From Geosiphon pyriformis uo1 (Eukaryota > Fungi > Glomeromycota), in NCBI GenBank assembly GCA_016748015.1, contig JAAOMT010000128.1, forward strand, positions 2,115,538-2,179,537: 64,000 bases of DNA, read 5' to 3'. This document shows positions 4,356 through 33,372 of this stretch, piece after piece. Every line of letters starts with the position of its first letter. Position 1 is the stretch's first letter. The notes beneath the pieces were generated by a model, which worked only from the letters and a program-made list of their open reading frames with translations, had not been told where the DNA came from and searched no databases. The position numbers and the translations under genes were made by a program.

Positions 4356-5178
4356 TAGTAGTATAATAGCCACAAATTAATTTGTTGATCAGAGATTAAG
4401 GCTGGGAAACAAGAAATTACGAAAAATTGTACCATTCAATTTGACCATTATTAACGAAATAATTTTCCGTTAAAAATTTATCTCTCTATATAATGCTAAT
4501 TTAGTAATAATAAAAATTTTTGTGAAATGTTTAATATTGACACAAAGGGGTATTTTTTGAATTGAAAATTTATTAAGTTTACTGGTTTCCGAGTCAATCG
4601 TGACTTTGTTAAATCGTACGAATCAGGAGACCATTGTGTTTCGTGCATTTAATGTAACGATATTCCAATCATTGATCAATGATCATTGAAAAAAAAAATC
4701 TTCATTTACCAAACATATTTAATCAATATTGTAATAGTAGTGATTGATAGTAGTGATTGATAATAGCAGTGTTGATAAAAGTAATAAAGTAAAAAAGTAA
4801 TAAAGTAAAAAAGTAAAAAGTAATAGGTAATATATACGAACACAGGTAAGCTGCAGTCGGTCGATTTAATTTCCATCCTGAAAGGTATCACATGTGGTCA
4901 TTCCGGAGAAGCTGAAAAGAACAATTAACCATTATCTGTTCCCCATTTTGAGTCGAATGGTTGAGAAACAGCTTTAGTGAATCACGTTTTTTTTGGTGAC
5001 GATTTACTTTATTGTTTATTTTTGTGATACTTTAAGATTTGGCGGGAAACCAAATTTTTTAAAAATGGTATAATTTTTTTTTGAGAAAAAAATTATGGAT
5101 GTAGTTTTTAGTTTTTAGAATAGTTATTAGATAAAAATAAAATAAAATAATTTTTTTTTTCCAAATATTTTTAAGGAG

Positions 5179-10834: not shown

Positions 10835-10854
10835 NNNNNNNNNNNNNNNNNNNN
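10835..10854. other. assembly gap (N run)
   Basis: 20 N. Confidence 1.
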
Positions 10855-15729: not shown

Positions 15730-15888
15730 NNNNNNNNNNNNNNNNNNNNNNNNNNNNNNNNNNNNNNNNNNNNNNNNNNNNNNNNNNNNNNNNNNNNNNN
15801 NNNNNNNNNNNNNNNNNNNNNNNNNNNNNNNNNNNNNNNNNNNNNNNNNNNNNNNNNNNNNNNNNNNNNNNNNNNNNNNNNNNNNNNN
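15730..15888. other. assembly gap (N run)
   Basis: 159 N. Confidence 1.
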
Positions 15889-18199: not shown

Positions 18200-19600
18200 T
18201 TAAATTTAACATATTATTTTTTTTATGTTTAATTATGAATTCTTTAACAAATTTTTTAATTTTGTTTTTAATTAAATTAATTTCAATATATATATTAATT
18301 TTATCTTTTGTATTGATCAAAAAATAATAATACAATCTCCATGATATAATTTTACTAAATATAATTTTTTCTTTACTAAATTTTTTTGGATAACATGTAA
18401 TTATACTAAAAAAATTAAAATATTACTTTTTTAAATATTAAAACTATTATTTTCTTATAAAATACATTTTTTTTAAAAAAAAGATAATCTCTTTATTATA
18501 AAAATTTTTTTTATAATACTATTTTATATTTTAGTACTTTTTTTTTGCAAAGATTTTAATAAATTCTTTAAAATAAATATAAATTTATAAATTTTATTTT
18601 AAACTAATTAAATTTTATTTAATAATTTTATTTTTAAATATTTTAAGTTAATATATATTTTAAGTAACGTAAATCATTTGCAATAATTAATGAAATATTG
18701 TGTTAATAATAAATTTTAAAAGTTCCAATTAAAATATAAAATTTATTTTATTAAAAATTAAAAATACATATTATTAATTTATAATTTAAATATTTAATAT
18801 TAAATTAAATTAAGTATGTAATAATAAAGAAAAATTTTTATTTTATAAAGTTTTTATAAGTTCAAAATTGATCAAAGCTTAATAAATTAATAATTGAACT
18901 TATTAAGTAATAAAAAATAATTAAAATAATTAAAAACTGGTTAAAACAATAATAATTATACAATAATTATACAAATCAAATTTAAAAAGCTGTTTTTTGT
19001 AATATTCATTTTTTTTTACCTATAAATTAGTTTGTATTTATATTTACTTTACATAATAAATTATTATTAATTTTAATATTATTAATATTTTAACAATAAT
19101 AAAAATTATGAAATTATAAATTTAAGTAAAATATATTACTAATTTTAAAAACTATATAACCAAAAAAATATTAATTAATTTAGTTTAAAAATGTTTTTTA
19201 AAACATTATTTTATTTGTATATAAAATTAATTTTAATTTTAAATTAAATTTTAAACTGGTATTATTTTTTTAATATATTAATTATTACATTAAAAAAGAT
19301 GATAAATAACAAAACAAATAAATTAAAAAAAAGTAAGATTTGCAGTATTTACATAACAAAATAAAAGTTTACAAAAAATTTTTGTAAAAAAATTAAATAT
19401 ACACATTCAATTATTTTGCAACAATGAAAATTGATTATTTAAACTAAATTAAAATTCTTCAATAACAATTTTAAATATAATAAGAAAAAATAAATTGACA
19501 AGCTCAATTTTAATAACAGTATTTAAAAATATTTGAAATGTAAACTTTACACAAAACAGCATATTGTCTTTAATAACTAATTTGAAACCAGCAAAACCAA
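18200..19600. mobile_element. extremely AT-rich degenerate sequence, probably a hypermutated transposon relic (family not decodable)
   Basis: Same near-absence of C/G as the decodable LINE at 24-31 kb; sharp boundary with the TERT relic; no motif recovered. Confidence 0.4.
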
Positions 19601-19636
19601 GCAATAACTAAAACACAGTTAACAATTAATGATAGG

Positions 19637-22363
19637 TCAGCAACTGACCACATCCAGCTGCAACTGCGAATAGAAGTCCTTTAAAGTATTAACGAAATTT
19701 CGACGCTTTAAAGGCTTAGCTATGTGCACACGCCTTTTGGCGAGTGGACATAGCCACTTGGCATGATTTTTGTGGACCCAGGTTATCGACGACTCTTCAC
19801 ATGTGATCACATTATAGATGCCTTTAATAGAATTTATAATGATCCCCATTACCAAGTCGTCAGAAAATTTGAGCCCACGAGAACTCAACTCCTCCACATA
19901 TTCGTCAAATTTCATTGCCCCTAGCAAGAAATTTTGATAGAAATTGTCTCGGGCTGTTCAACCTCGTATTTAGGAAATTTTCTGAGCAATTATTTTTCAT
20001 GAATCTAAAAAAATCAATACTTTTGGTCAATTAAAGAGAAATATTTTGAAAGTCAAAGGGAAAAACTTACTGCTTTAGTTTTTTTTTTGGAACTCTACTA
20101 GGAAAAATATTCGACATGATCGTCATTTGATCTCGAAGTGGAGTCGAAAGAGTTCGAGAGTAATCACACTTGACCTCCAAATCTTTGGTATGAATTAGGA
20201 GGCCGCACCACGGAAATTCGGTTGGCGATAATTTGACCTCTTCATGATCAAAGTTTACCAATGTTTTTTCAGTGTTTATGAAGCATCCATACTCAGGATG
20301 ATCTACATCAATTCAAATCAAATCTCAAATGTTGGCATTCTGCCTCAAGTTATGATGGAGATATAAAATGACAAACCTTCATTCATGACCCTCAAGAAAC
20401 GTATCGCATGGGCTTTATCCGTGGTGATATAAAGGAAATCATCCAACCATCGAAGCAGAACCTATATCGAAGGGAAAGTAAATCTCGTAATTATTTAGGA
20501 GAAAAATGAATAAAGGATTAAAAATATTAACCCCATCTTTATCAAGAAAATCTAATCTTGTTTTTTCGAGGTCCTCAAAGAAAAAACTGTTTAATGTAAA
20601 ATGGAGGTCTTAAATTAACAACGGCGGAATGGAAATAAGAAAAGCAATCTATCAACAAGCACAAACCTGCATAATAAAGATGATATTATCGAGTCTTGGA
20701 TCTTTTTAACTTTATTGTAAACTTCAATCTGGTTTACAGGATCTTTATATAATTGAAACTGTTTTGGAAAAATCACCGAGAGAATATCTTGAGCATTACA
20801 TTCGTATCGCTTAGCTTGGGCTAACACATCTGAATTATTATCATATTAGCGTTGCGTTAATTGATTCACATGTAACGCTGAAACGGTAAAACTAACCAAA
20901 CAGTCTTTTTATCACCAGCAGGAATACAAATGGGCCCACGATAAAAAATATACCCCTTTTGAGCATTTCCGCAGTATCAGTTCTTTTACTGTAGAGATAG
21001 AGGAATGTTGAATTTTATCCAAATCAATAAACAACAGTATTTCGTGAAAATTACCTCGAAAGAGTTTCCAATCGAAAAAGTTTATTGAAAGGCTCTCGAG
21101 GCATCAGGTTCATTCTGAAGTTGAAGATAAACCAATAATGGTTTTGTTGGATAATTTCTTTGACTTAATGTTATCGTTGTCGCTTGAGGTAAATGAATTA
21201 GCATTACTCTCCTTTCCTGATTCTCGTTATCTACTATAATTGGTGAAGTTGTTGTTATAGCGGAAGTTTTGGAACACCTTCAGTGGATTAATTGTTTTTT
21301 CACTTCAGAAAGAAATAGCTATTATTATGATCGATCATTTAAATTCAAAAAAATACTGATTACAGCTTTTCGATTAAAATTAAAATTACCTTAGGGATGT
21401 TTCTAATCAGAATTTTTTTTTCTAGCAGGTTCTTGAGAGGATGAACCATCTTGACTCACTTCCCATGACTTCTTTTGAGAACTTTTTATAACTAGATTGT
21501 CACAGGGGAGACCTGTATTAAATGTGATAATCAATGCAAGATTTACCAGTAGCTTGATAATAGCAATCATTATGCAAGTGAATGAAGGTGGATTTTCATC
21601 TTAGCAGATGTGCCATTTCATATCCTCCAATCCTAATATCAACAATAATTTAGTAGTTCTGTCATTAATATGGTTCCAAAAGATACTCATGAAATAAGGA
21701 AGACCCAAGATTTAATATGTTGACTAACCGATTGAAAAGAATCTGCCAACAGGATGAGTTACGTATTTCGCCCAGAATACTATTAGGGTAATTATTGATA
21801 TATCGGAAATTTTACTTCCCTAATAGTTTATATAGAGAAGAACAAAATAATATATATGATTGTTTTATATGTAAGTACTTTCAAATGACAAATTTTTTTT
21901 TAAGAAGACCATACTTTCCAATAACCTTGCATGAGAACATTAGTTTTATCATAATCGCTGAATGTTTCGGGCTTATGTTTTTCAACGAGCCATTTGATCA
22001 CAGTGATCAAGACCTATTTAAAATACAGTTGATGAAAATATATAGGGTTAAAACGCAAAAGAATAAAGTTAAATCTTATACCTTTTGCAACGTCATCACA
22101 TATTTCGGTTCAATTGATTGGATTAATGAATCAAAAACCCATAATCTGTATCAGGCTGAACAAATGTATTATTAATAAAAGTTTTATATTCTTCCGGATC
22201 GTCATACTGTAAAAATGCTTTCGGCCTATAGCTTCTTTTATTGAAGAGATAATCTTTCATCGACATAATTTTGGGATAGATAAGTTTCAATACTATATTG
22301 TGAGTTATCGGTGATGAGGGTATTTTTTGAGGTCGGACAAACTTTCTTAATTGACGAAGACAT
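19637..22363 (-). pseudogene. TERT: telomerase reverse transcriptase pseudogene, intron-containing, with large internal deletion
   Basis: Spliced hand translation gives TEN/GQ motifs (VIKWLVEK...NVLMQGY 21941-21921; YPNSILGEIRNSSCWQILFNR-IGGYEMAHLLR*KSTFIHLHNDCYYQATGLP), TRBD start (IFYRGP...LPFQHVL...IFPKQFQL), motif B' (QDSIISSLLCSFFFEDLE), motif C (LLRWLDDFLYIT), D (HPEYGCFINTEKTLVNF), E (FPWCGLLI) and CTE (FYQNFLLGAMKF, HAKWL). Lesions: TGA 21598-21596, frameshifts near 22240, 21797, 21415, 20953 and 19950, and loss of the CP/QFP/T/1/2/A motifs. Confidence 0.93.
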
Positions 22364-22423
22364 CAATTCGATGCTATTTATAGAATAGGACAAAGGAGGA
22401 AAGGCTATGGGGAACCGAATCTT

Positions 22424-23130
22424 CTAACATCGGAAAGTTAATGATCCCAATTTGATGTCAACAAATTGATAAAAAGGGTTCATGAGCTCAGGGAGATATT
22501 GTGATCCCGGAATATCCCCGTGAGTATGTGTAAAGTCGATTATTCGAAAGATAGGATCCCAACGTTGGGGATTAATAGGCATGTATGATAAGGAAAATCG
22601 CTTCAAAGTGATAAAGCTCCCTTCTTTCAATCCATTATAGGGAGAATTACTGGAAGATGAGCAGAAAATACAATGGTAAAAATGTTGAGTTTATTAAAAA
22701 TGTGAAAGTTGAACCCGTAAAGGTTTTTTTTTCAACTTTAAGTGAGTTTAATTGTTTCTAAAATTTTGAACTTCGAAAAATAAACTATATTTACCTGTCT
22801 AAAAACACCTGTGGGAATACACAGGGAAGGTAATAGCGCGAATCGTGAAGAAACGCGTTAATGGTAACTACCTTTAACCTTGAGTTCGATAACTCTTCTC
22901 TGGTGGTTACCTTTTATTTTTGGAAACCCAGTTTAATTTAATTTTCAGTTGCAAAGGACTTCAAAACAAAAGCTAGCCAAATGCATTACTTTGGAAATTT
23001 GAGCTTGGAATTCAGAGTTGAATTCTGAAATATTCCCGCGAGTTTCAAGTAAATTCTTAATCCACAATTTGTTAAGCAGTGAATAAGAAGCGGCCCAGGC
23101 AGGCCAATTGTCTTTCTTACGAGGAAACAT
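22424..23130 (-). CDS. EST3: Est3/TPP1-family OB-fold telomerase-associated protein, 160 aa; exons 23130-22990, 22910-22795, 22649-22424
   Basis: GT-AG introns join three exons into an uninterrupted 483-nt ORF. Colinear motifs resemble yeast Est3 as I recall it: LWIKNLLE (PWIKALIE), AQISKV (AKITKF), AFLHDSRYYLPCVFPQ (ASIRDSSHQILVEFSQ), GSFITLKRFSLSY, DPIFRI, GSQYLP. Adjacent to TERT. Needs HMM confirmation. Confidence 0.72.
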
Positions 23131-24249
23131 TTTTCAAAGGTAATTTTTTTTAGACGTGTAGAAGGCCACTTTGTAAAACCCACGCAAATTTTCGATCACT
23201 CAGTTAGGGACTTAGTTCTATTGAGCCGAAAATAAAATCTATTATTTACGACACCAGAGGAAAGAACATTCATCCAAAGAACTTTTAATAACTAATACTA
23301 GTTTTCTAGGCACTACCAAAACCAATAGTGTTTCCAGAAGACAGAAAGGATAAAGCACTTCAGTTTTTATCCAATCTTTGAGATCAGATAATCTGATGAA
23401 TTAATTGGTGTACTGATCTATAAAAAGAAAACTGTTATTTATTGTCAATAAAAACACCAGAAATTAGATAAAATTAATGTTTTATTTTTTACAAAAGAAA
23501 AAATTATTATTTTTAAAAATTTAGCAAAAACAAATTAAAAATAATTAAAATTTATTTATTTATTAATTAATTATATATTGACATAATAATTTAATAACTA
23601 ATTACACAATAATTAACTTAATTAAAAAATTTACAACAGATAATTATAATAAAATATTAATTTACAATAATTTAAAATATTATAAAATAGTTAAAAATAC
23701 AAAAATAGTTAAAAATAATTAAAAATATGTATATATATATAAATAGTTTTAATTAAAAAATTAAGTTAACAATAATTAAAATAATATATAATAATAATTT
23801 TTATTTTTTAAAATAAATATTTACAATGTAATTTTTTACATACTTTTAATTATTTTAATAAATTAATTAAAATTAAAATAACAATTTTATTTACATAAAA
23901 AACTATTATTAAATTTAATTATTAATTAAATTTAAAACAAATTATTACTTTAAAATTAATTATTATAAAATATTAATTAAATTTTTATATGTTTAATATT
24001 ATGTGTTTTTTTATAAATTAATATTAATATTAATTTAATATTTATAGCTAAATTTATATATTAAAACTTTATTTATTAATATAAATATATATATAAAACT
24101 TTTTTTTCTTATATTCCAAAATTTTAAAAAAATACAACAATTTTGAAAAAAGTTTTTTCTGTTTTTAATTATTTATTCCTATTCAATTGAATATTACAAA
24201 AATTTTTTTGTTTAAATATAAAACTACTAATTATAATAGTAGTTTAAGT

Positions 24250-27200
24250 ATAAAGAAATTCAAAAAAAATTTGGTATTAATTTTGTAACTTTAGATTTAT
24301 TTGCTAAAAAAAATGTAAAAAAGATGTTTTAAAAAAATCTATAATCAAAATTAGTATAAACAAGTTTTAAGATACATTTGGGTTTGTTAAAATATTTGGA
24401 TTAAATACTAAAAGCACTATTAATACAGAAAATATAGACATAAATAAAAAGTTTTTTATAGAAAAAACCAGTTTTTAACTTAAAAATAATAATAAATTAG
24501 AATACAAAAATATAGATATAACTTTAAAAAAACCAAAAAAAACTATTATGAAACATGTTTTTAGAAGATAAATTAACTTTAATATTAATAGTAATAATAA
24601 AAATAATATTTTAAATAAAATTTTTTTTTTCTCTTTTTTTTTTAAAACTTTTGGTAAATATTTTGGTCTATAAGTTTTTTGCTTTGAATATAAACTCTTT
24701 AACAATATTTGAAAAGTCATTTTAGGAAAAATTAAAAACTATTAAGAATTTTTTTTCTGATATAAATAGTAATAAGTTTAATAAATAATAAGAATATTAT
24801 AATAAACACTAATCTTAAATACTCGATAAATAATTAAACAAATTGGACAGTAATAATCAAAAAATTTTTTGTAAAAACATTATTAAAAACTGTATAAACT
24901 GTATTTGTTAATTTTAATACTATTAAGTTAATCAAAATATAATTAATAAAGTTATAGCAAAAAATAATCATAAAATTAAATAATTAAAATTAAGCTGATC
25001 TATTAACTTTTAAATAATTTATTTTTATTGGAAAAGATATAATCTGTATAATAAAAATTAATATTAATAAATAATTATAAAATATTAAAGATAAATTTAA
25101 GACTTTATTTTATATATTGTTTATAAAAATAAATACTTATGATTTTTAGAATTTTATTAGTTCAATTAATAAAAAAAACTTGTATAATTAATTATAATTT
25201 TATTAATTATATTTATCTTAAGTATATTATTATATGTTTTAATTTAAAAAAGAGTTTAATTAAAACAATAACTGTAATTTTTATTATAAAAATGTTATTA
25301 TTATTAAAGATTTTTCTATTTTTTTCTTAATATTATTAATGCTGTTTTGTTGTTAATTTTGCTGTTTAATAGAAGTTAGTAAAATTTTAATAGAAGTTAG
25401 TAAAATTTTAATAAGCTAATTTTTTTTTAAAGTATTTTTTTATACTTTAAATTATATATATTGTTAAATTTATAATGAAATAATCAATTCTATGTCAATT
25501 ATTTATATAAATACTTTGCAATAAAAGTTGATTTTTTTACTAGAAAATTTTGTTTGTAAGCTTTTCAAAAATATATGTAGTTATTTTGCTATAAAAGTTA
25601 ACTTTTTTACAAGAAATTTCGATTATAGACTACTTAATAATATAAAAAAAATAAAAAAAATAAAAAAAAATTAACTAAAAAAGATATAAAAAGTATGTTA
25701 AGAAAATTATTTTAAATTTAAGCTTAAAAGTTACTAATAATAATAAAAATTAATAATTAATTAATTTCAACTGTTAGTATAAAATGATTAATTTTAAACA
25801 AAAATAATTAATAATTTTTATGTTTTTTAAAGTGAATTTTATCAAAAAGAAAAGTTTTTTTTATATAATTTATTATAATATTATTTTATAATTTAATATT
25901 TTTTTTTAATTTTTATCAAACTACAAGTTATTTTTACAAACTATAAATTATTTTAGTAAATTGTTAAACATTTTATTAAATTACTAAATATTTTAGCAAA
26001 TTTGTTTTATTGTTATATAGTTTAGTATATTGTATAATCTAATTATTACAATTGATTATATTTGTATTTTGTACAAATTAAATTATTAATTAAATAATAA
26101 TTAATTAATTAAAATAAATAATATATATGCTAATTAATTATAAAAATTATAAAAATAATTTTATGGTAAATAATATCTTAAATTTTAGTTAATAATATTG
26201 TGCTTTATTAGTTCAGTCTATTTTTAATTGTCTGTTAAGATTGTAATAAACATGATTATAACTCTTTTAGTTGTAATTTAATTAATTTAAAAAAAAAGAA
26301 TTCTTTTTTTAATTATAGACCAATATAAATTTGCTTAAATTTATGCTAAAAAGTTTGCTTTTGTCATTTAGCCAATAGCTTTTAAAAACAAATTTTGAAC
26401 ATTTATTATTGATAAATCTTTTTTTTAAGTATTTTTTAGTATTTTTTTTAGTTTGATTTTTTGAATAAAGTTAAGTTTTTTTCAATGGCTGTAAATAAAA
26501 TAAAATTAAATACAGTTTTGTTAGCCTTAAAAAACAATTAATAAATTGGTTAAAAAATTAAATACACATATATCAACAGTTTTTTAGTTTAATTTTATAT
26601 GTTAATTGTTAATAATCTTTTTATTACAAAATTAAATGAATAATATAGTAATAAAAAAAAGTTTAAATATATATATTAATAATAAAACTGTAATAAAACT
26701 AAATTTTTTAGCATTATTAAATATAACAAAGTTAGAAGTTCAGTTAAATAATTTGTTTAGTTTAGTTATAAATTTGCTAATAAGATTTAATAATTTGGCT
26801 TTAGTTTTAAATATATTTCTTTTTTTATTATTCTAATAATGAATTTTATTTGAAAAATTATTACATATAATATTAAGAATATAAATATTTTTGTTAAGCA
26901 AGATAATAATATTAAGTAATATAAAAAATTAAAAAATAAAATTTTAATTATTACTAAAACTAAGCTTTGTTTTAATATCAAACAATAGATTGCAAATAAA
27001 TTTGTAAATATAAAAGTGTTTACTTTTGGTTTGAATTTAAGATACATGAATATTAATATTTTGATAATTATAAATAAATATTTAGCTAAGTATGTTCAAA
27101 AATTTTAAAAATTTTGATAAGTTTATAATAATTTATTTATTGTTTAAAAACAAACATTTAATTTTTAAATTAAAATTATATATATATATATTTTTAAAAA

Positions 27201-30200
27201 TGCAGTTAAATTAAGCTTTTATTATCAGTTTTTTTATAATTAGTACATTCAATAAAAGCATTTTTTTATTTTAAAGATAATTTTAATAAAATAATATTAA
27301 ATACAATATTAGTTTTAAAAAGTACATTAATTTTGGTTTAGTTAATTCTTTGATTAATAGTTATTTGTTAAAAGTTTTATATAGAATAACTTTAAAAAAA
27401 TTAAAAAAACAATTGATTACATTTTTATGTTACCAAATTTGGTTAATATAGTAACTAACAGAATAGTTTTAAATATAAGAAATTTTTTTAATATTGATTA
27501 TTTTATTGTTTCTGTTTTTATTAATTTAGACAATATTTTAGATAAGTATTTAAATTTTTTCACAAGTAAATTAATAAAAATATAACTTTAAAAAGACTAA
27601 TATAACTAAATAGACTTAATTTAAAAATATTACATTGGTAAATATTATAATATTTAGTAAAAATATTAGTTATTCAAAAAAAATTCTGATTTGAATATTA
27701 TATAAAATTTTATTTAGAGAATTGTTTGTTTTTTAACCAATAAAATTTTTTTCAAGTTTTAAAGCAAAAATTTTAATGGTTTTTTTATCAAAATTTTATT
27801 ATATTTTTATAAATTAAAGATTTTGGTTTCTAAAATTATTTAAATTTTATGTTTGAACTTTAATTATAAGTTAAATAATCTAATTATTTGTTAGCTATTA
27901 TTTAATAAACTATATATATATTATGTTTAAAATTTTTTGGTATTAAATACTAATCTTAACATCATTAAATTTAAGTTAGTTAAAATTAGAAAAGTTTATT
28001 ATATATTTAGGCTAGATAAATTTTGGTAAATTAAATTAATGGTATTATTAATAAAAAAATAGAGAATTTTAAAATCAATAAAGATTATATTATCAGAAAA
28101 ATTTTTAAATATTTTTTTAGAAAAATAGTTTTAAATCATTTAGTAAATAGTAAAAATCTAATGTTAAAGTCTAAAAAAAATTAAATTTAAAGTAAATTTA
28201 ATTATAAAAAAATAGACAAAGAAATATAAAGTATTGAAAAATATTTTAGATGTTTAATATTAACAATATTTGTCTTTAATCTATGTAATTAATCACATTT
28301 TTTTTGGGATTATAAATAAAATTGGCTTTAATAAAATAATGAGTATTATAATAGAGCTGCTAAATAAGAAAATTTTTGGTTTGTTTAAAATTTTAAATAA
28401 ATTTTGGAAACATTATAATTCTTTTATTTTGGATTTGTTACTGGATTTTTTTAATGTTTGTTTAATAAGTAAATTAATTTTTTAATTTTAAAAAAAAATT
28501 TTAATGTCAATAATTTTTAAACTATATAAATAAAAAAAGATTTTAATTAACATTGCTTTAATTAAAATTGTTTAAAAAATTTTTTTTAAAATCTTGTCTA
28601 ACAAAATTTTTTTTGTTTATAATAAGTTTAATGTTTTTTGTAAAAACAATTTTTCAGTATTAAAAGATATTATTATACAATTTTTTATCTTTGTATTGGT
28701 TTGGTAATAAAAAATATTTTAAAAAAAAATTGTAAATTTTAATTGGTTTTACAAAATATGTACAAACATATAATTTAATAAATTAAAAATACTTAAAAAG
28801 CAATTTGGTTGTGTTAAAATATGTGACAAATTTGTTAAGTTTTTTGATAGTATTTATAAAGATAGAATTAATCAAGTTATAACTGATTTTGGCTTAATAA
28901 ATAATTATTATATACATAATAGATTAGATCAAAATGAGATGTTTTTTTTTTCTAACATATTTTTTATAACCATTTTTTATATAAAATCAAAAAATAAAAG
29001 AGTGTATATAAGTATAGAATTGATTTTAAGTTTATAATTAAAACAAAATATATTAAAAATTAAACAGATATAATATTTTTTTTTGTTGCTAATATATTTG
29101 TTAATAATACAATTTAAATAAACAATAGTTAATTTGTAATTTAATATATTTTGAATATTGTAAGTAAGTTTTTTTGGATTAATAATATTTTAATTATAAA
29201 ATGACATTTTTTTTTGTTAATTAGTAGTTTGTTAATTTTAATTGCTAAAAAAAGAAAATCTTACAGATATTTAAGTATTTTTCTATTAATATAGAGTTTA
29301 TTAAAGTTTAACTTAGTAAAAATTTATTTAAATATTAAATTTTTTGTTGATAAAGTATTAAAAAAAATTATTTTTAATAAATAGTTTCTGTATTTAGTTT
29401 TAGTAATACTTTACTCAATATTAATTTTAAAATTCAATTTTGTTTTATTTTTAATAATATGTATAATAAATAAAATATTTTAATTCATAAGAGCTTAAAA
29501 TCAAAATTTAATTTGTCTATAAACTTTTCAAATAATGTAATATATTATTTTTTTTTATATAATTTAAAAACTTTTAAACAAGTATAAACTAAATACAAGT
29601 TAGTTTTGGTGCTAAGTTTTTTTAATGCTTATAGTATTTTAGACTGGTTATTTAATCATAAATCTCTTAACTTATAAGTTTTAAATTAGTTTTTTTATTA
29701 TTTTTTGTGTTTTCTAATTTGTATTAAAATTAGTATAATAAACAACTTTTTGATTAATATAGTTTATATATTTTGTAATTATAATTTATTAATAATTAAT
29801 TTTCTATACTTAGTATTTTGATTTTAAAATAAAACTTTTATGTTTGTAGTATTGTGTAACTTAGTTTTTTTCGAAATATTCTGCTTACTTAAACAGTTTA
29901 AAATTGTTTTTGTTGAACAATTGCATAATAAAAAAACAATATTTTTGACTAAAAAATATTTAGATACTAAAAAAAATAAAATTTTTAAGACTCTGTTTCT
30001 AATTAATTTATATTAATTGTTTGGTTTTTAAATAATATAACTTCTTATTCTTGTAATTTGTTTTTAATTATTAGTTTTCAGTCTTTAAATGTTTTTAATT
30101 TATGTAATTTTGGTTTGGTTTGTAAATGTTTAATTAATATTGATATAGTTTGTTTTTCTATCTATACTAATAGTTTTTTAAGCAATCTAAATATTATTAA

Positions 30201-31550
30201 TATAAAAACTAATATTACAGTTTTTTTGAAGATTTAAGTTTGGGCTTAAGTATTAAAATATTTGAATTAAAGTTTTTTATAATAGCTAAGCTACAAATTA
30301 TTATACTGGTTTTAGAATGTGTTTTTTTTTTGTGTAATTAAAATATTTTTTAACAGTTAGATTGCTTTAAATACATATTGCTTAGAATTAGTTTTAATTT
30401 TATTGAATTTTTATAATTATTATAGGATTAAATAATAACATATTATAAACATTATCAAAAAAAAATTTAAGTATTAACTAATATAAAATTAAAAGTTATT
30501 TTAAAGTTTTAAATAATAAGAGAATTAATATTTTAGCTAATATTGTTTTATTTTTAAATATAGTGCTTTTAATTTATATGCAAAACTAATTTATTAAGAC
30601 TGATAATAAAATTGTTTATAAAAATACAAGATATTTTATTTGTAAAGTTTTTTAGATAATTTATTATATCTATTAAGAAATTAAATTTGATATTAAAGTT
30701 TTAAATAATAATTTGTTTAAGAACATAGATTAAATCTAATTATTATTGGTTTAATATTCTAATTTTCTCATAAAAACTAAGTTTATAAGCAAATTATGAT
30801 TAAAACACACTTTTATTTTATAAAAACTTTGTATTATAAACTGTTAATAACTGTCTATAAATATTTATATAATAAGTATTATTATAGTATTTGTGTCTGT
30901 ATTATAAAAAAATTGAATTTTAGATCATATTTTTTTTGTAATATAAATATTAGAGTTTACAACAAAGCATTATCTAGTCTATACAGATTATTAGCTTATA
31001 TATTTTAATTACTTTTTTTATGTTTTTTTAATATTGCTATGTATTTTGTTTTGTGTAAAATATTTGTTTTTAAAAAATAATTTTATAAGTCTTTTTTAAT
31101 TTTTAAAAATAGTAAAATTGTTAATTATAAAATTATAGATTTTATATGTAGTTTTAATTTAGTTTATAAGAATAATATTTGGTTTGTTTGTTCTAAGTAT
31201 TGAGTTTTCATAAAAAAAAGTAGTCTAATTTTATGTAATAGAACTATATTGATAATTATTATTAATCTATTATTTGTATTATCTAATGATATCATTAAAC
31301 TATTTGAAATTTCTAAGGCTTTTGAAATTAGTTTTAGTATACACAAATTGTATTTATTCTTTTTAGATATTAGAAATATAATTTCTGTGTATATAAACAT
31401 ATAGTGTTGTTTTAATTGGCCTGAATGGCTGGTTATATATAGTAAAATACATAATTTATATTCAGTTTAAATTATTTAGTTTGATGTATTATATTAGATA
31501 GTATTTGGATTTTACTTATTAAATATAATAATGCTTGTTTGTTTAAAAAA
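24250..31550 (+). mobile_element. near-full-length non-LTR retrotransposon (LINE): ORF1 ~24250-26836; ORF2 (APE endonuclease, RT, RNase H, Cys-rich end) from ~26839; hypermutated, dead
   Basis: Motifs are recoverable mainly by reversing transitions: APE *KIITYNIKNIN (WKIATCNVRGIN) and ITKTKL (ITETKL); RT IALIKIV*KIFFKILSNKI (IALIETARKILSKILSDRI), LVLQNMYK (QDMRKAYD), RLDQNE (GLDQGE), FVNNTI* at 29097 (FVDDTIW); RNase H IYTNSFL (VYTDGSL), AKLQII (AELQAI), FNS*IAL (SDSQAAL), KIKSYF (KVKGHS). Ends approximate. Confidence 0.9.
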
Positions 31551-33372
31551 TTAATATAATAAAAAAATTTTAATTTTAATTTGTTAATAGTTATAATTAA
31601 AAGTTATTAATTTAAGATATTAATAAATAAATAAATGTAAATTGTATTAATTTTTAGATTGGGTAATAATGTATATATATTAATTTTTTTGTTGTTTTTG
31701 TTGTTTTTTTTTGCTTATTTTTATTTGATTAAACTTATCTTACAATTATATTTAAAAATAAATAATTTTTTAATAGAAAGATTACAAATTACAAATTAAT
31801 TAATTAGTAATAATAATAATAATTAAAATTTTTATAAAACAATATTATATTTTAAAATTATTTATTAAATTAATATTTAATTAAAAACTAATTAAAACAA
31901 AATAGTAAAAGTAGAATTTTTTAAAGTTTGAATCAATTATTAAATAAAATTTTTTTAAACCAACATTTTTAGTTTTTTAATAGGTATCATATGTTTTGTT
32001 TGACAATATTTCATATATATTTAATGATCAATATTTTAATTATTATTTATGATAAATAATAAAAATTTGCAATAATCAAATTAATAATTTGGTAATAACT
32101 AAATTGAAAATTTGCCCATGAAAAATAGAGTAAATATTATAAAGTAATTTTAAAAAAATATTAAAAATATGTTAAATAAAAATCTTGCTGTCAAATATTT
32201 AATTTAATTTTAATCAAATAATTCAAAGAAATCGCGGAATTTCTAATACTGTATATTATGTTTTGGGATTATCCTTTGTTTGTGATACTTTGATCAATTT
32301 TAAGAATGAATTTATCTATCAAAAAAACATAACCCTCTATCTGAAAAACAAGAAATTTGGAATTCGTTGAAACTAATCAGCACTGTTAAAGCTTTTTGGA
32401 TTACTACAAAAGTTTGTGACTTAAAAATTTAATTGTAATAGTATTTTAATTCTTGGAACGTGGCATTCTGATTTTTTTTTGTCAATAATTCTGAAAGAAT
32501 ATATACACATATATACAACAAAAATATCATTTGTTGGCTGGTGATTCGATTTTAAGCAAAAAATTTCTAAATTCAATGCTTCAAAAGTTATCTTTGTAAT
32601 CTTACTAGTTGTAACTTAGCAAACAATATTAAGAAATTTGATAAATTTTTCGCTTATTTTAGAAGGTTTTCTTGGTGTAAATTTAATTTTGATTTCTTTT
32701 CCAGGAAATTCCGATTTCGCAAAACTCAATTCCCTGAAAATCTCAATTATCCAACTATCACAAGTTTTACAGACAAAGATATGTCAATCTTTATGACATT
32801 ATTGGAATTCTTATTTAATCATGTATCACATATTCTGGTTTCAATCGGAAATTTCTAGAGTTTTTAAGAGTGTTAAACAAAGTTGTGGACTATTAAGTGT
32901 CATACAGTTAATTGTTAAATTAAAAAATATCCTTTAGTTTTTTTTATCATATCGTAATACCTCGCTTCTCTGTAGATATTAGGTTGAAACACAACGGTCA
33001 AAAATTATGGAAAAACTTTTCGCATGTATTTTTTTAAAATAAGGACTCCGTTTATACTACCTCTTCGAAAGAGATTTCACACTCGCGAATTGGTAACACA
33101 ATGGTTGAACATTCATATCAAAAACTAGGGCTAAGAAAATATTTATACAAAGCTCAAAAATAATGTTTTTGCATTAAACATTTAATTTTTCTTTTCTTTT
33201 TTCCAAAAGAAACAGAATTTCTTGTAAAATAAAATTTATTTTTATCAATTTTTGAGTAAATAACTTGGTTTTCTTGTTTCAATCAACTCTGCCGAGCTCT
33301 GAATAAAATTCAAAATAATATTCAATAACTTTTAGAAAAAAAAAAACTATTTTCAAAAAACGAATCAGGGAT

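Follow-up and report, generated by a model that had tools for sequence, protein, structure and literature searches.

The window (the whole stretch of 64,000 nucleotides that was analysed, from contig C718 of Geosiphon pyriformis) contains on its minus strand a 160-codon gene for an OB-domain protein, which consists of three exons and is ended by TAG 22426-22424. Both introns have GT-AG borders and compatible phases, and the spliced product is identical to P0001, annotated at NCBI as hypothetical protein G9A89_020105 of Geosiphon pyriformis (160 aa). The splice of intron 1 is supported by cDNA contigs of a paralogue, and that of intron 2 was seen in a cDNA contig bearing window-type letters. 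After the TAG the frame stays open for 20 codons (KIRFPIAFPPLSYSINSIEL) up to ATG 22363-22361, where it continues with MSSSIKK. The earlier note had described an OB-fold gene abutting TERT, and the exons and frames of the window confirm the TAG, the 20 open codons, the in-frame ATG 22363 and the common strand. Taken alone, the open stretch is a weak pattern, with a chance of ~6% for 20 same-frame open codons in DNA of 27% GC (simple arithmetic); a paralogous locus on contig C572 accounts for it. The features of the window are as follows.

19451-23194, minus strand: duplicated OB and TERT segment; blastn against C572 (L014:689-6796) gives 87-93% identity in three blocks
23130-22990, minus strand: OB exon 1, 47 codons from ATG 23130, residues 1-47 of P0001
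22910-22795, minus strand: OB exon 2, 116 nt, the only TPP1-like stretch found here by Pfam
22649-22427, minus strand: OB exon 3 in its present state, 1 nt and 74 codons
22426-22424, minus strand: TAG stop, the result of 2 bp lost between 22440 and 22439 by comparison with C572 (pairwise alignment)
22364-22423, minus strand: the '60-nt spacer'; the frame is restored here by loss of 1 bp between 22408 and 22407
22361-22363, minus strand: ATG, an internal Met (ELMSSSIEK) within the putative fusion frame of C572
19637-22363, minus strand: TERT remnant with TEN exons, part of the linker, motif C-E exons and CTE exons
20691-20698, minus strand: breakpoint of a 2.1-kb internal deletion; L014:2089-4165 with TRBD, T motif and RT motifs 1, 2, A and B' is absent

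The locus on C572 is ~90% identical overall to that of the window and has no stop at the junction. A single exon of 583 nt comprises OB exon 3, a Pro/Ser-rich linker of ~50 residues and the beginning of TEN; the frame is open over 209 codons that lead from OB exon 3 into TEN. The complete TEN domain is distributed over five exons. With the RNA-supported introns imposed, ~1,278 codons can be chained in phase between the ATG at L014:6696 and a stop at ~951. This chain contains 24 introns, 11 of which, all canonical GT-AG, are supported by cDNA contigs (run X1), while 13 are predicted only. Unconstrained exon chaining picks wrong introns where length is gained and is weak evidence alone; the forced-intron version was used.

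In an exon-by-exon translation of C572, RT motifs 1, 2, A, B', C, D and E are all legible and in order. The TRBD (PF12009) reaches 31 bits in the best single exon and 63 bits with in-frame neighbours summed, and TERT_C (PF21399) reaches 47.6 bits (cut-off 27). Furthermore, the T-motif exon matches residues 474-516 of Tetrahymena TERT and the motif C-E exon matches human TERT 890-973 (E=2.5e-10). Judged by these matches, C572 carries a real TERT. With its OB/linker/TEN exon as query, no protein model containing that part was found in the libraries searched.

Much less is left of TERT in the window. The 2.1 kb missing relative to C572 comprise the TRBD and RT motifs 1-B', and the corresponding portion of C572 contains the TRBD and T-motif matches. 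Consequently, the Pfam profile finds no TRBD anywhere in the window. Of the RT motifs only C-E are retained, in an exon 90% identical to its C572 counterpart. TERT_C falls below its cut-off of 27 with 17.6 bits, and the exon-by-exon Pfam scan of the window gave weak matches only. The first coding stretch carries an 11-bp deletion (22295/22294) and a 1-bp deletion (22138/22137), the TEN-coding part a TGA (21598-21596), and there are gaps in the CTE. Because of these frameshifts, the TGA and the deletion, the TERT frame of the window is not uninterrupted. Its identity as TERT is genuine, but the gene is a remnant.

Comparison of the two paralogues explains the present arrangement. A 2-bp deletion at the OB end of the window copy created TAG 22426-22424, and a 1-bp deletion 32 nt further downstream brought the old TERT ATG back into frame; more indels, a stop and the 2.1-kb deletion destroyed the TERT part. 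By alignment with C572, the '60-nt spacer' is what remains of the coding linker of a fusion gene. Since it results from deletions in a decayed duplicate, the apparent neighbourhood of two genes reflects a broken fusion and not an operon. A TGG/CAG>TAG change or UAG readthrough, as proposed in the earlier note, is replaced by the 2-bp deletion as the origin of the TAG, and the common frame goes back to the 1-bp deletion. The fusion proposed there is supported, but for the paralogue, where one open frame leads from OB exon 3 into TERT. Given that frame, neither a bicistronic mRNA nor a TERT promoter inside EST3 is needed, although an internal start is possible. The adjacency is also not a peculiarity of the relic, as the intact TERT carries the OB part too.

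Further copies in the genome agree with this picture. A third, older copy (C779) shares the C572 state at the 1-bp site, and its frame upstream of the ATG is open for 35 codons, across an in-frame insertion of 33 nt. Every relic that reaches the 5' end retains OB exons: exon 1 with upstream DNA in C608, exons 2-3 in C779. Both flanks of the duplicates are dispersed AT-rich repeats. No element boundaries were found that would show the duplicates to have arisen by transposon capture.

As the alignments show, the telomerase gene of Geosiphon pyriformis is present in the window as a pseudogenised segmental duplicate. We consider it likely that the intact form of this gene, on C572, encodes a single OB-linker-TERT polypeptide of ~1,278 residues. 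This protein would consist of an N-terminal OB fold of ~157 residues, the ~50-residue Pro/Ser-rich linker and a complete TERT (TEN, TRBD, RT and CTE), and would be made from one mRNA. The annotated 160-aa 'hypothetical protein' of the window is the head of a broken TERT copy.

The nature of the OB domain is less clear. PF10341 (TPP1) matches P0001 with 15.3 bits (E=0.018; residues 24-81 on profile positions 24-75) and exon 2 of C572 with 15.5 bits (E=0.015); window exon 2 gives E=0.12. The alignments have the same register in both paralogues and this is the only Pfam family that registers, but all scores are below the cut-off of 26.5. As a lead, LWIKNLLE near the N-terminus and the strand DSRYYLPCVF are similar to the motifs PWI(K/R)xLI and D(S/G)xH of Est3 and TPP1. 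The label 'Est3/TPP1-like' is unproven; the data are suggestive of a domain of the TPP1/TEBP-beta/Est3 kind. A single-sequence AlphaFold2 model of P0001 was unusable (pLDDT 41), and phmmer found no match at E<=10 among PDB sequences for P0001 or the C572 exon 3 product.

Alternatively, the fusion may be real and its N-terminal domain an RPA70N-like or other protein-binding OB fold, which could for example recruit RPA or repair factors. We regard this as possible, though rather less probable than not. All named neighbours of the OB part in the Atlas (language-model) comparison are OB-fold families, with Rep-A_N at the top (0.94; 202/256 features, 12/30 matches), and the Pfam TPP1 match is below its cut-off. 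However, seven TEBP_beta/TPP1 clusters follow at 0.91-0.92, Rep-A_N/RPA70N (PF04057) does not match P0001 even at E<=10, and TPP1 surfaces independently in both paralogues. Six-frame genome scans with PF10341 and PF04057 returned nothing; they are silent on a separate TPP1 or RPA70N gene, because even this locus went undetected. Representative, word-index and metagenome protein searches revealed no OB homologue in other organisms. For the 195-residue OB/linker/TEN exon, the exhaustive representative search returned, besides two low-complexity matches, nothing but the protein of the window itself. Word-index searches with this exon, P0001 and the motif C-E exon gave P0001 only or nothing, with a length filter that excludes full-length TERTs.

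Combining both aspects, the only intact telomerase gene of Geosiphon pyriformis would be a natural fusion of an Est3/TPP1-type OB domain to the N-terminus of TERT, with the TEN partner tethered in cis, and a frameshift in the window duplicate would have released a free, transcribed OB protein of Est3 size. We put this combination forward tentatively, with nearly as much to be said for it as against it. It is a further step to assume that the released 160-residue protein is retained and used, as an Est3-like subunit arisen by fission, and we consider this unlikely. The OB reading frame is intact with good splice sites, annotated by NCBI, and transcribed and spliced according to the contig with window-type letters. 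It bears no disabling lesion in 480 nt, compared with ~8-10 in ~1,700 nt of the TERT part (P ~0.08, Poisson estimate), and its stop lies directly past the last predicted strand. However, dN/dS of the OB exons between window and C572 is 0.36 (10 synonymous and 14 non-synonymous changes), a value that cannot be clearly told apart from the 0.58 of the dead TERT part. Moreover, the entire relic including its dead parts seems to be transcribed, as are other relics.

Transcription across the OB-TERT junction was seen. One cDNA contig is gap-free on L014:5729-6110 and, with C572-type sequence, comprises OB exon 3, the linker, the ATG and the beginning of TEN, whereas the window-type deletions at the junction occur in none of the cDNA contigs. 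Since its ends bear window-type letters, this contig was probably assembled as a chimera of two paralogues, both transcribed. The RNA covers C572 unevenly, and depth is zero at L014:3264-4051 and 4643-5036. No single molecule spanning OB exon 1 to the TERT exons was seen among these assembled contigs, which by their nature cannot prove one transcript. Another contig skips 73 nt inside exon 3 (GT 5851 to AG 5779, L014). It was rejected as a productive splice, since the conserved first helix of TEN is lost and the frame meets a stop; the letters of this contig fit a C779-type copy.

These data also bear on whether C572 could comprise two genes as well, with the OB mRNA ending and the TERT mRNA starting within the 583-nt exon 3, TERT translated from the internal ATG, and the missing stop tolerated or recent. 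The Met in ELMSSSIEK lies at the usual place of a TERT start, ~25 residues before the first TEN helix. Given this position, ATG 22363 of the window is probably the ancestral TERT start, and such an internal ATG could yield a TERT lacking the OB part. Additionally, one cDNA has its 5' end at L014:5878, marked by a loose end that resembles adapter. This end, however, is located downstream of the ATG, and similar ends at 1821 and 3165 make them look like truncated cDNAs. An OB mRNA that lacks a stop codon would amount to a non-stop message. C572 has an open frame and C779, too, an open linker, the contig is unbroken over the junction, and the 5'-complete relics were all copied along with OB exons. 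Two separate genes on C572 are thus improbable. That the window locus itself still produces OB-TERT or TERT by UAG readthrough or from a bicistronic mRNA, as the common strand and frame might suggest, is refuted by the frameshifts, the TGA and the 2.1-kb loss of the TRBD and half of the RT, and can practically be dismissed.

If the single OB-linker-TERT polypeptide is real, it would provide independent genetic evidence for the partnership of OB fold and TEN domain, a new TERT architecture and a ready construct for use in structural studies. The apparent lack of a separate TPP1 or Est3 gene in this lineage would then be easier to understand, and the fusion bears on the questions of whether the OB partners have one origin and what early-diverging fungi use. 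Together with the released OB protein, it would connect TPP1/Est3 with TERT in the manner of a 'Rosetta stone' and would illustrate a route by which an Est3-like subunit arises or is lost. A full-text literature search found no natural fusion of TPP1 or Est3 with TERT, and we found no prior description of a single open frame, as read here from the genome, that leads from an OB domain into TERT.

Recruitment and activation of telomerase depend on contact between TERT's TEN domain and an OB fold, which animals have in TPP1, ciliates in p50 and budding yeast in Est3. In Geosiphon the OB domain would presumably act in cis on TEN as the OB fold of Est3 or TPP1 does in trans, and so keep telomerase at the 3' end or activate it there. 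In the laboratory, Cdc13-Est2 constructs and tethers of TERT to telomere proteins join telomerase covalently to an OB partner and bypass a recruitment step. The covalent link is common to these tethers and to C572, which would be a natural gene. Est3 of budding yeast is likewise a small OB domain with no further domains (~180 residues versus 160 here), and by accident the window relic encodes a free-standing protein of just this size. In contrast, Est3 is a separate polypeptide from an unlinked gene, whereas the Geosiphon domain is predicted to be the covalent N-terminus of TERT, and kinship between the two is unproven. The likeness to the TPP1 OB fold with its TEL patch, to Tpz1, TEBP-beta and Tetrahymena p50 consists in the PF10341 match, which is below the cut-off, and in the TEBP_beta/TPP1 neighbours in the Atlas. 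TPP1 additionally has POT1- and TIN2-binding regions, none of which is present in the Geosiphon OB part, and is located at the telomere rather than borne by the enzyme. Its OB fold binds TERT's TEN domain and thereby recruits and activates telomerase (PMC7338525, PMC8653790). A natural parallel to a strengthened contact is Est3 of Candida parapsilosis and Lodderomyces, in which N- and C-terminal extensions reinforce the bond to TEN (PMC7338525), there on a separate protein and not by fusion.

The TERT gene of the window is a remnant, since a six-frame profile scan covering the 128-Mb, 792-contig assembly, in which the window is C718:2115538-2179537, gave no TRBD match inside the window, TERT_C reaches only 17.6 bits there and the readable pieces are confined to TEN, motif C-E and CTE. 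The adjoining OB gene was confirmed as the earlier note had described it: its reading frame ends in TAG and is followed in the same frame by 20 open codons, ATG 22363 (MSSSIKK...) and TERT-like exons down to 19637. Both introns of the OB gene are GT-AG with fitting phases, and it encodes the same protein as NCBI record P0001 ("hypothetical protein G9A89_020105 [Geosiphon pyriformis]", 160 aa).

OB gene in the window
23130-22990, minus strand, exon 1
22910-22795, minus strand, exon 2
22649-22427, minus strand, exon 3
22426-22424, minus strand, stop codon TAG

The scan placed a TRBD on another contig, C572. Upstream of it, on the same strand, lie OB exons with 89-91% protein identity to those of the window. 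Window 19451-23194 aligns with positions 689-6796 of L014 (C572:752500-761500) in three blocks of 87-93% identity. The segment L014:2089-4165, which comprises TRBD, T motif and RT motifs 1, 2, A and B', is missing from the window (breakpoint 20691-20698). In L014 OB exon 3 reads on into the TEN domain through a stop-free frame of 209 codons. The window CTE has several gaps, and further lesions were located, the deletions by base-by-base alignment with C572.

Lesions in the window
between 22440 and 22439, 2-bp deletion, shifting the frame into TAG 22426-22424
between 22408 and 22407, 1-bp deletion, restoring the frame
between 22295 and 22294, 11-bp deletion
between 22138 and 22137, 1-bp deletion
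21598-21596, TGA inside a TEN exon

The common frame and 60-nt spacer, for which an operon or fusion had been proposed, thus exist in the window because the 1-bp deletion at 22408/22407 restored the frame. At this site a more diverged copy (86%) on contig C779 has the C572 state. In its linker the 35 codons preceding the internal ATG are open, through an in-frame 33-nt insertion just before that ATG (L021:6151-6183), which is compatible with a linker that was coding when the insertion arose. Judged by these alignments, the open junction is the older state and the window lesions are derived, as both features of the C779 copy indicate. The earlier note had asked whether an intact TERT has the same neighbour; within the Geosiphon genome, the TERT of C572 carries the OB gene upstream, with no stop at the junction.

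At least three TERT relics exist besides the window copy, and weak TRBD-like matches were also found on C343 and C639.

Further TERT relics
C608:675500-685400 (L020), 71-80% identity, with stops; TERT body still joined to OB exon 1, with promoter-proximal DNA
C779:204000-213900 (L021), OB exons 2-3, pieces tandemly triplicated, and the TEN half
C392:183500-193400 (L022), RT and CTE half, partly inverted

Since no relic extending to the 5' end lacks OB exons, the OB-TERT linkage is older than even the oldest copy. Both flanks of the window relic, 18300-19450 and 23195-24250, have about 90-100 counterparts across the genome, on either strand and with 64-82% identity, which marks them as decayed dispersed repeats. 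Beside the relic lies an extremely AT-rich block (24001-32000, GC 12-14%). Two runs of N in the window, 10835-10854 (20 bases) and 15730-15888 (159 bases), are either assembly gaps or withheld stretches.

Between window and C572, dN/dS is 0.36 for the OB exons (10 synonymous, 14 non-synonymous changes) and 0.58 for the TERT exons. These values fit constraint on the C572 lineage; they are no demonstration that the window OB gene is retained.

Part of the C572 locus is held in one public sequencing run (X1, 2019). Although classed automatically as DNA, X1 is cDNA, because 11 joints in its contigs have the form of canonical GT-AG introns and sit where exon borders are expected.

Exons of C572 fixed by X1 joints (L014 coordinates)
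6696-6556, E1
6476-6361, E2
6216-5634, E3 (583 nt), OB end, linker, internal ATG and TEN start
5568-5470, E4
5376-5285, E5
from 5188, E6

E1-E6 are all in phase, as checked on exon ends or single-exon peptides, and six more X1-supported introns lie in the RT and CTE half. When a simple chaining script is made to use all 11 X1 introns, it yields a path of about 1,278 codons, in phase throughout, between ATG 6696 and a stop near 951 (L014), with 13 additional consensus introns (61-92 nt); unconstrained, the script is permissive, and weight is placed on the RNA-fixed stretches. Along this path TEN, CP/QFP, T, 1, 2, A, B', C, D, E and CTE follow exon by exon. Searches were run with one C572 exon at a time or with P0001. 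The TERT identity of C572 is independent of exon chaining: TRBD scores 31 bits in the best exon and 63 bits summed across exons, TERT_C scores 47.6 bits, and the exons match Tetrahymena and human TERT in the PDB.

The junction (L014:5729-6110) is covered gap-free by one X1 contig, and no window-type deletions occur there among the X1 contigs. Near its ends this contig has window-type letters; it probably arose in assembly, where 31-mers common to two transcribed paralogues let the path switch from one to the other. A C572-specific contig without differences joins E1 to E2 and reaches upstream of the ATG by 170 nt or more. Coverage is patchy, and X1 contigs cannot prove a single molecule. The relics are transcribed as well, since splicing is also seen in window-type contigs and in C779-type contigs, which have a diagnostic 10-bp deletion. 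In one cDNA contig a GT..AG interval of 73 nt is skipped in the TEN-coding part of exon 3 (L014:5779-5851, window ~22226-22294). This would shift the frame and lead to a stop after about 33 codons, and probably reflects C779-type transcripts that are spliced unproductively. In X1 contigs, three internal positions (L014 1821, 3165 and 5878) are followed by one and the same short adapter-like tail (CCCGGCCG...); such tails probably mark truncated cDNAs that end in a template switch rather than transcription starts.

For the N-terminal domain, the proposed Pfam check gave PF10341 (TPP1) as the sole family, below its cut-off; P0001 (E=0.018) and C572 exon 2 taken by itself (E=0.015) align with the profile in the same register. 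Protein-language-model neighbours are OB-fold families only, namely Rep-A_N (0.94), seven TEBP_beta/TPP1 clusters (0.91-0.92), then POT1, BRCA2 OB1 and CDC24 OB, with scores weakened by a low recognition value. A single-sequence AlphaFold model of P0001 failed (pLDDT 41), and a PDB sequence search with P0001 returned no matches. LWIKNLLE and DSRYYLPCVF may resemble stretches of Est3 and TPP1, namely their Trp motif near the N-terminus and their first strands. An OB fold is likely, and the chances that it is of the TPP1/Est3 kind are somewhat better than even.

The earlier note knew of no description of such an arrangement, and our full-text literature search likewise found no natural TPP1/Est3-TERT fusion; it found nothing on Glomeromycotina telomerase. 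Both Est3 and the TPP1 OB fold bind the TEN domain (PMC7338525, PMC8653790). An OB fold tethered in cis by a flexible linker of about 50 residues could occupy this site permanently, and recruitment or activation would then be independent of a separate subunit.
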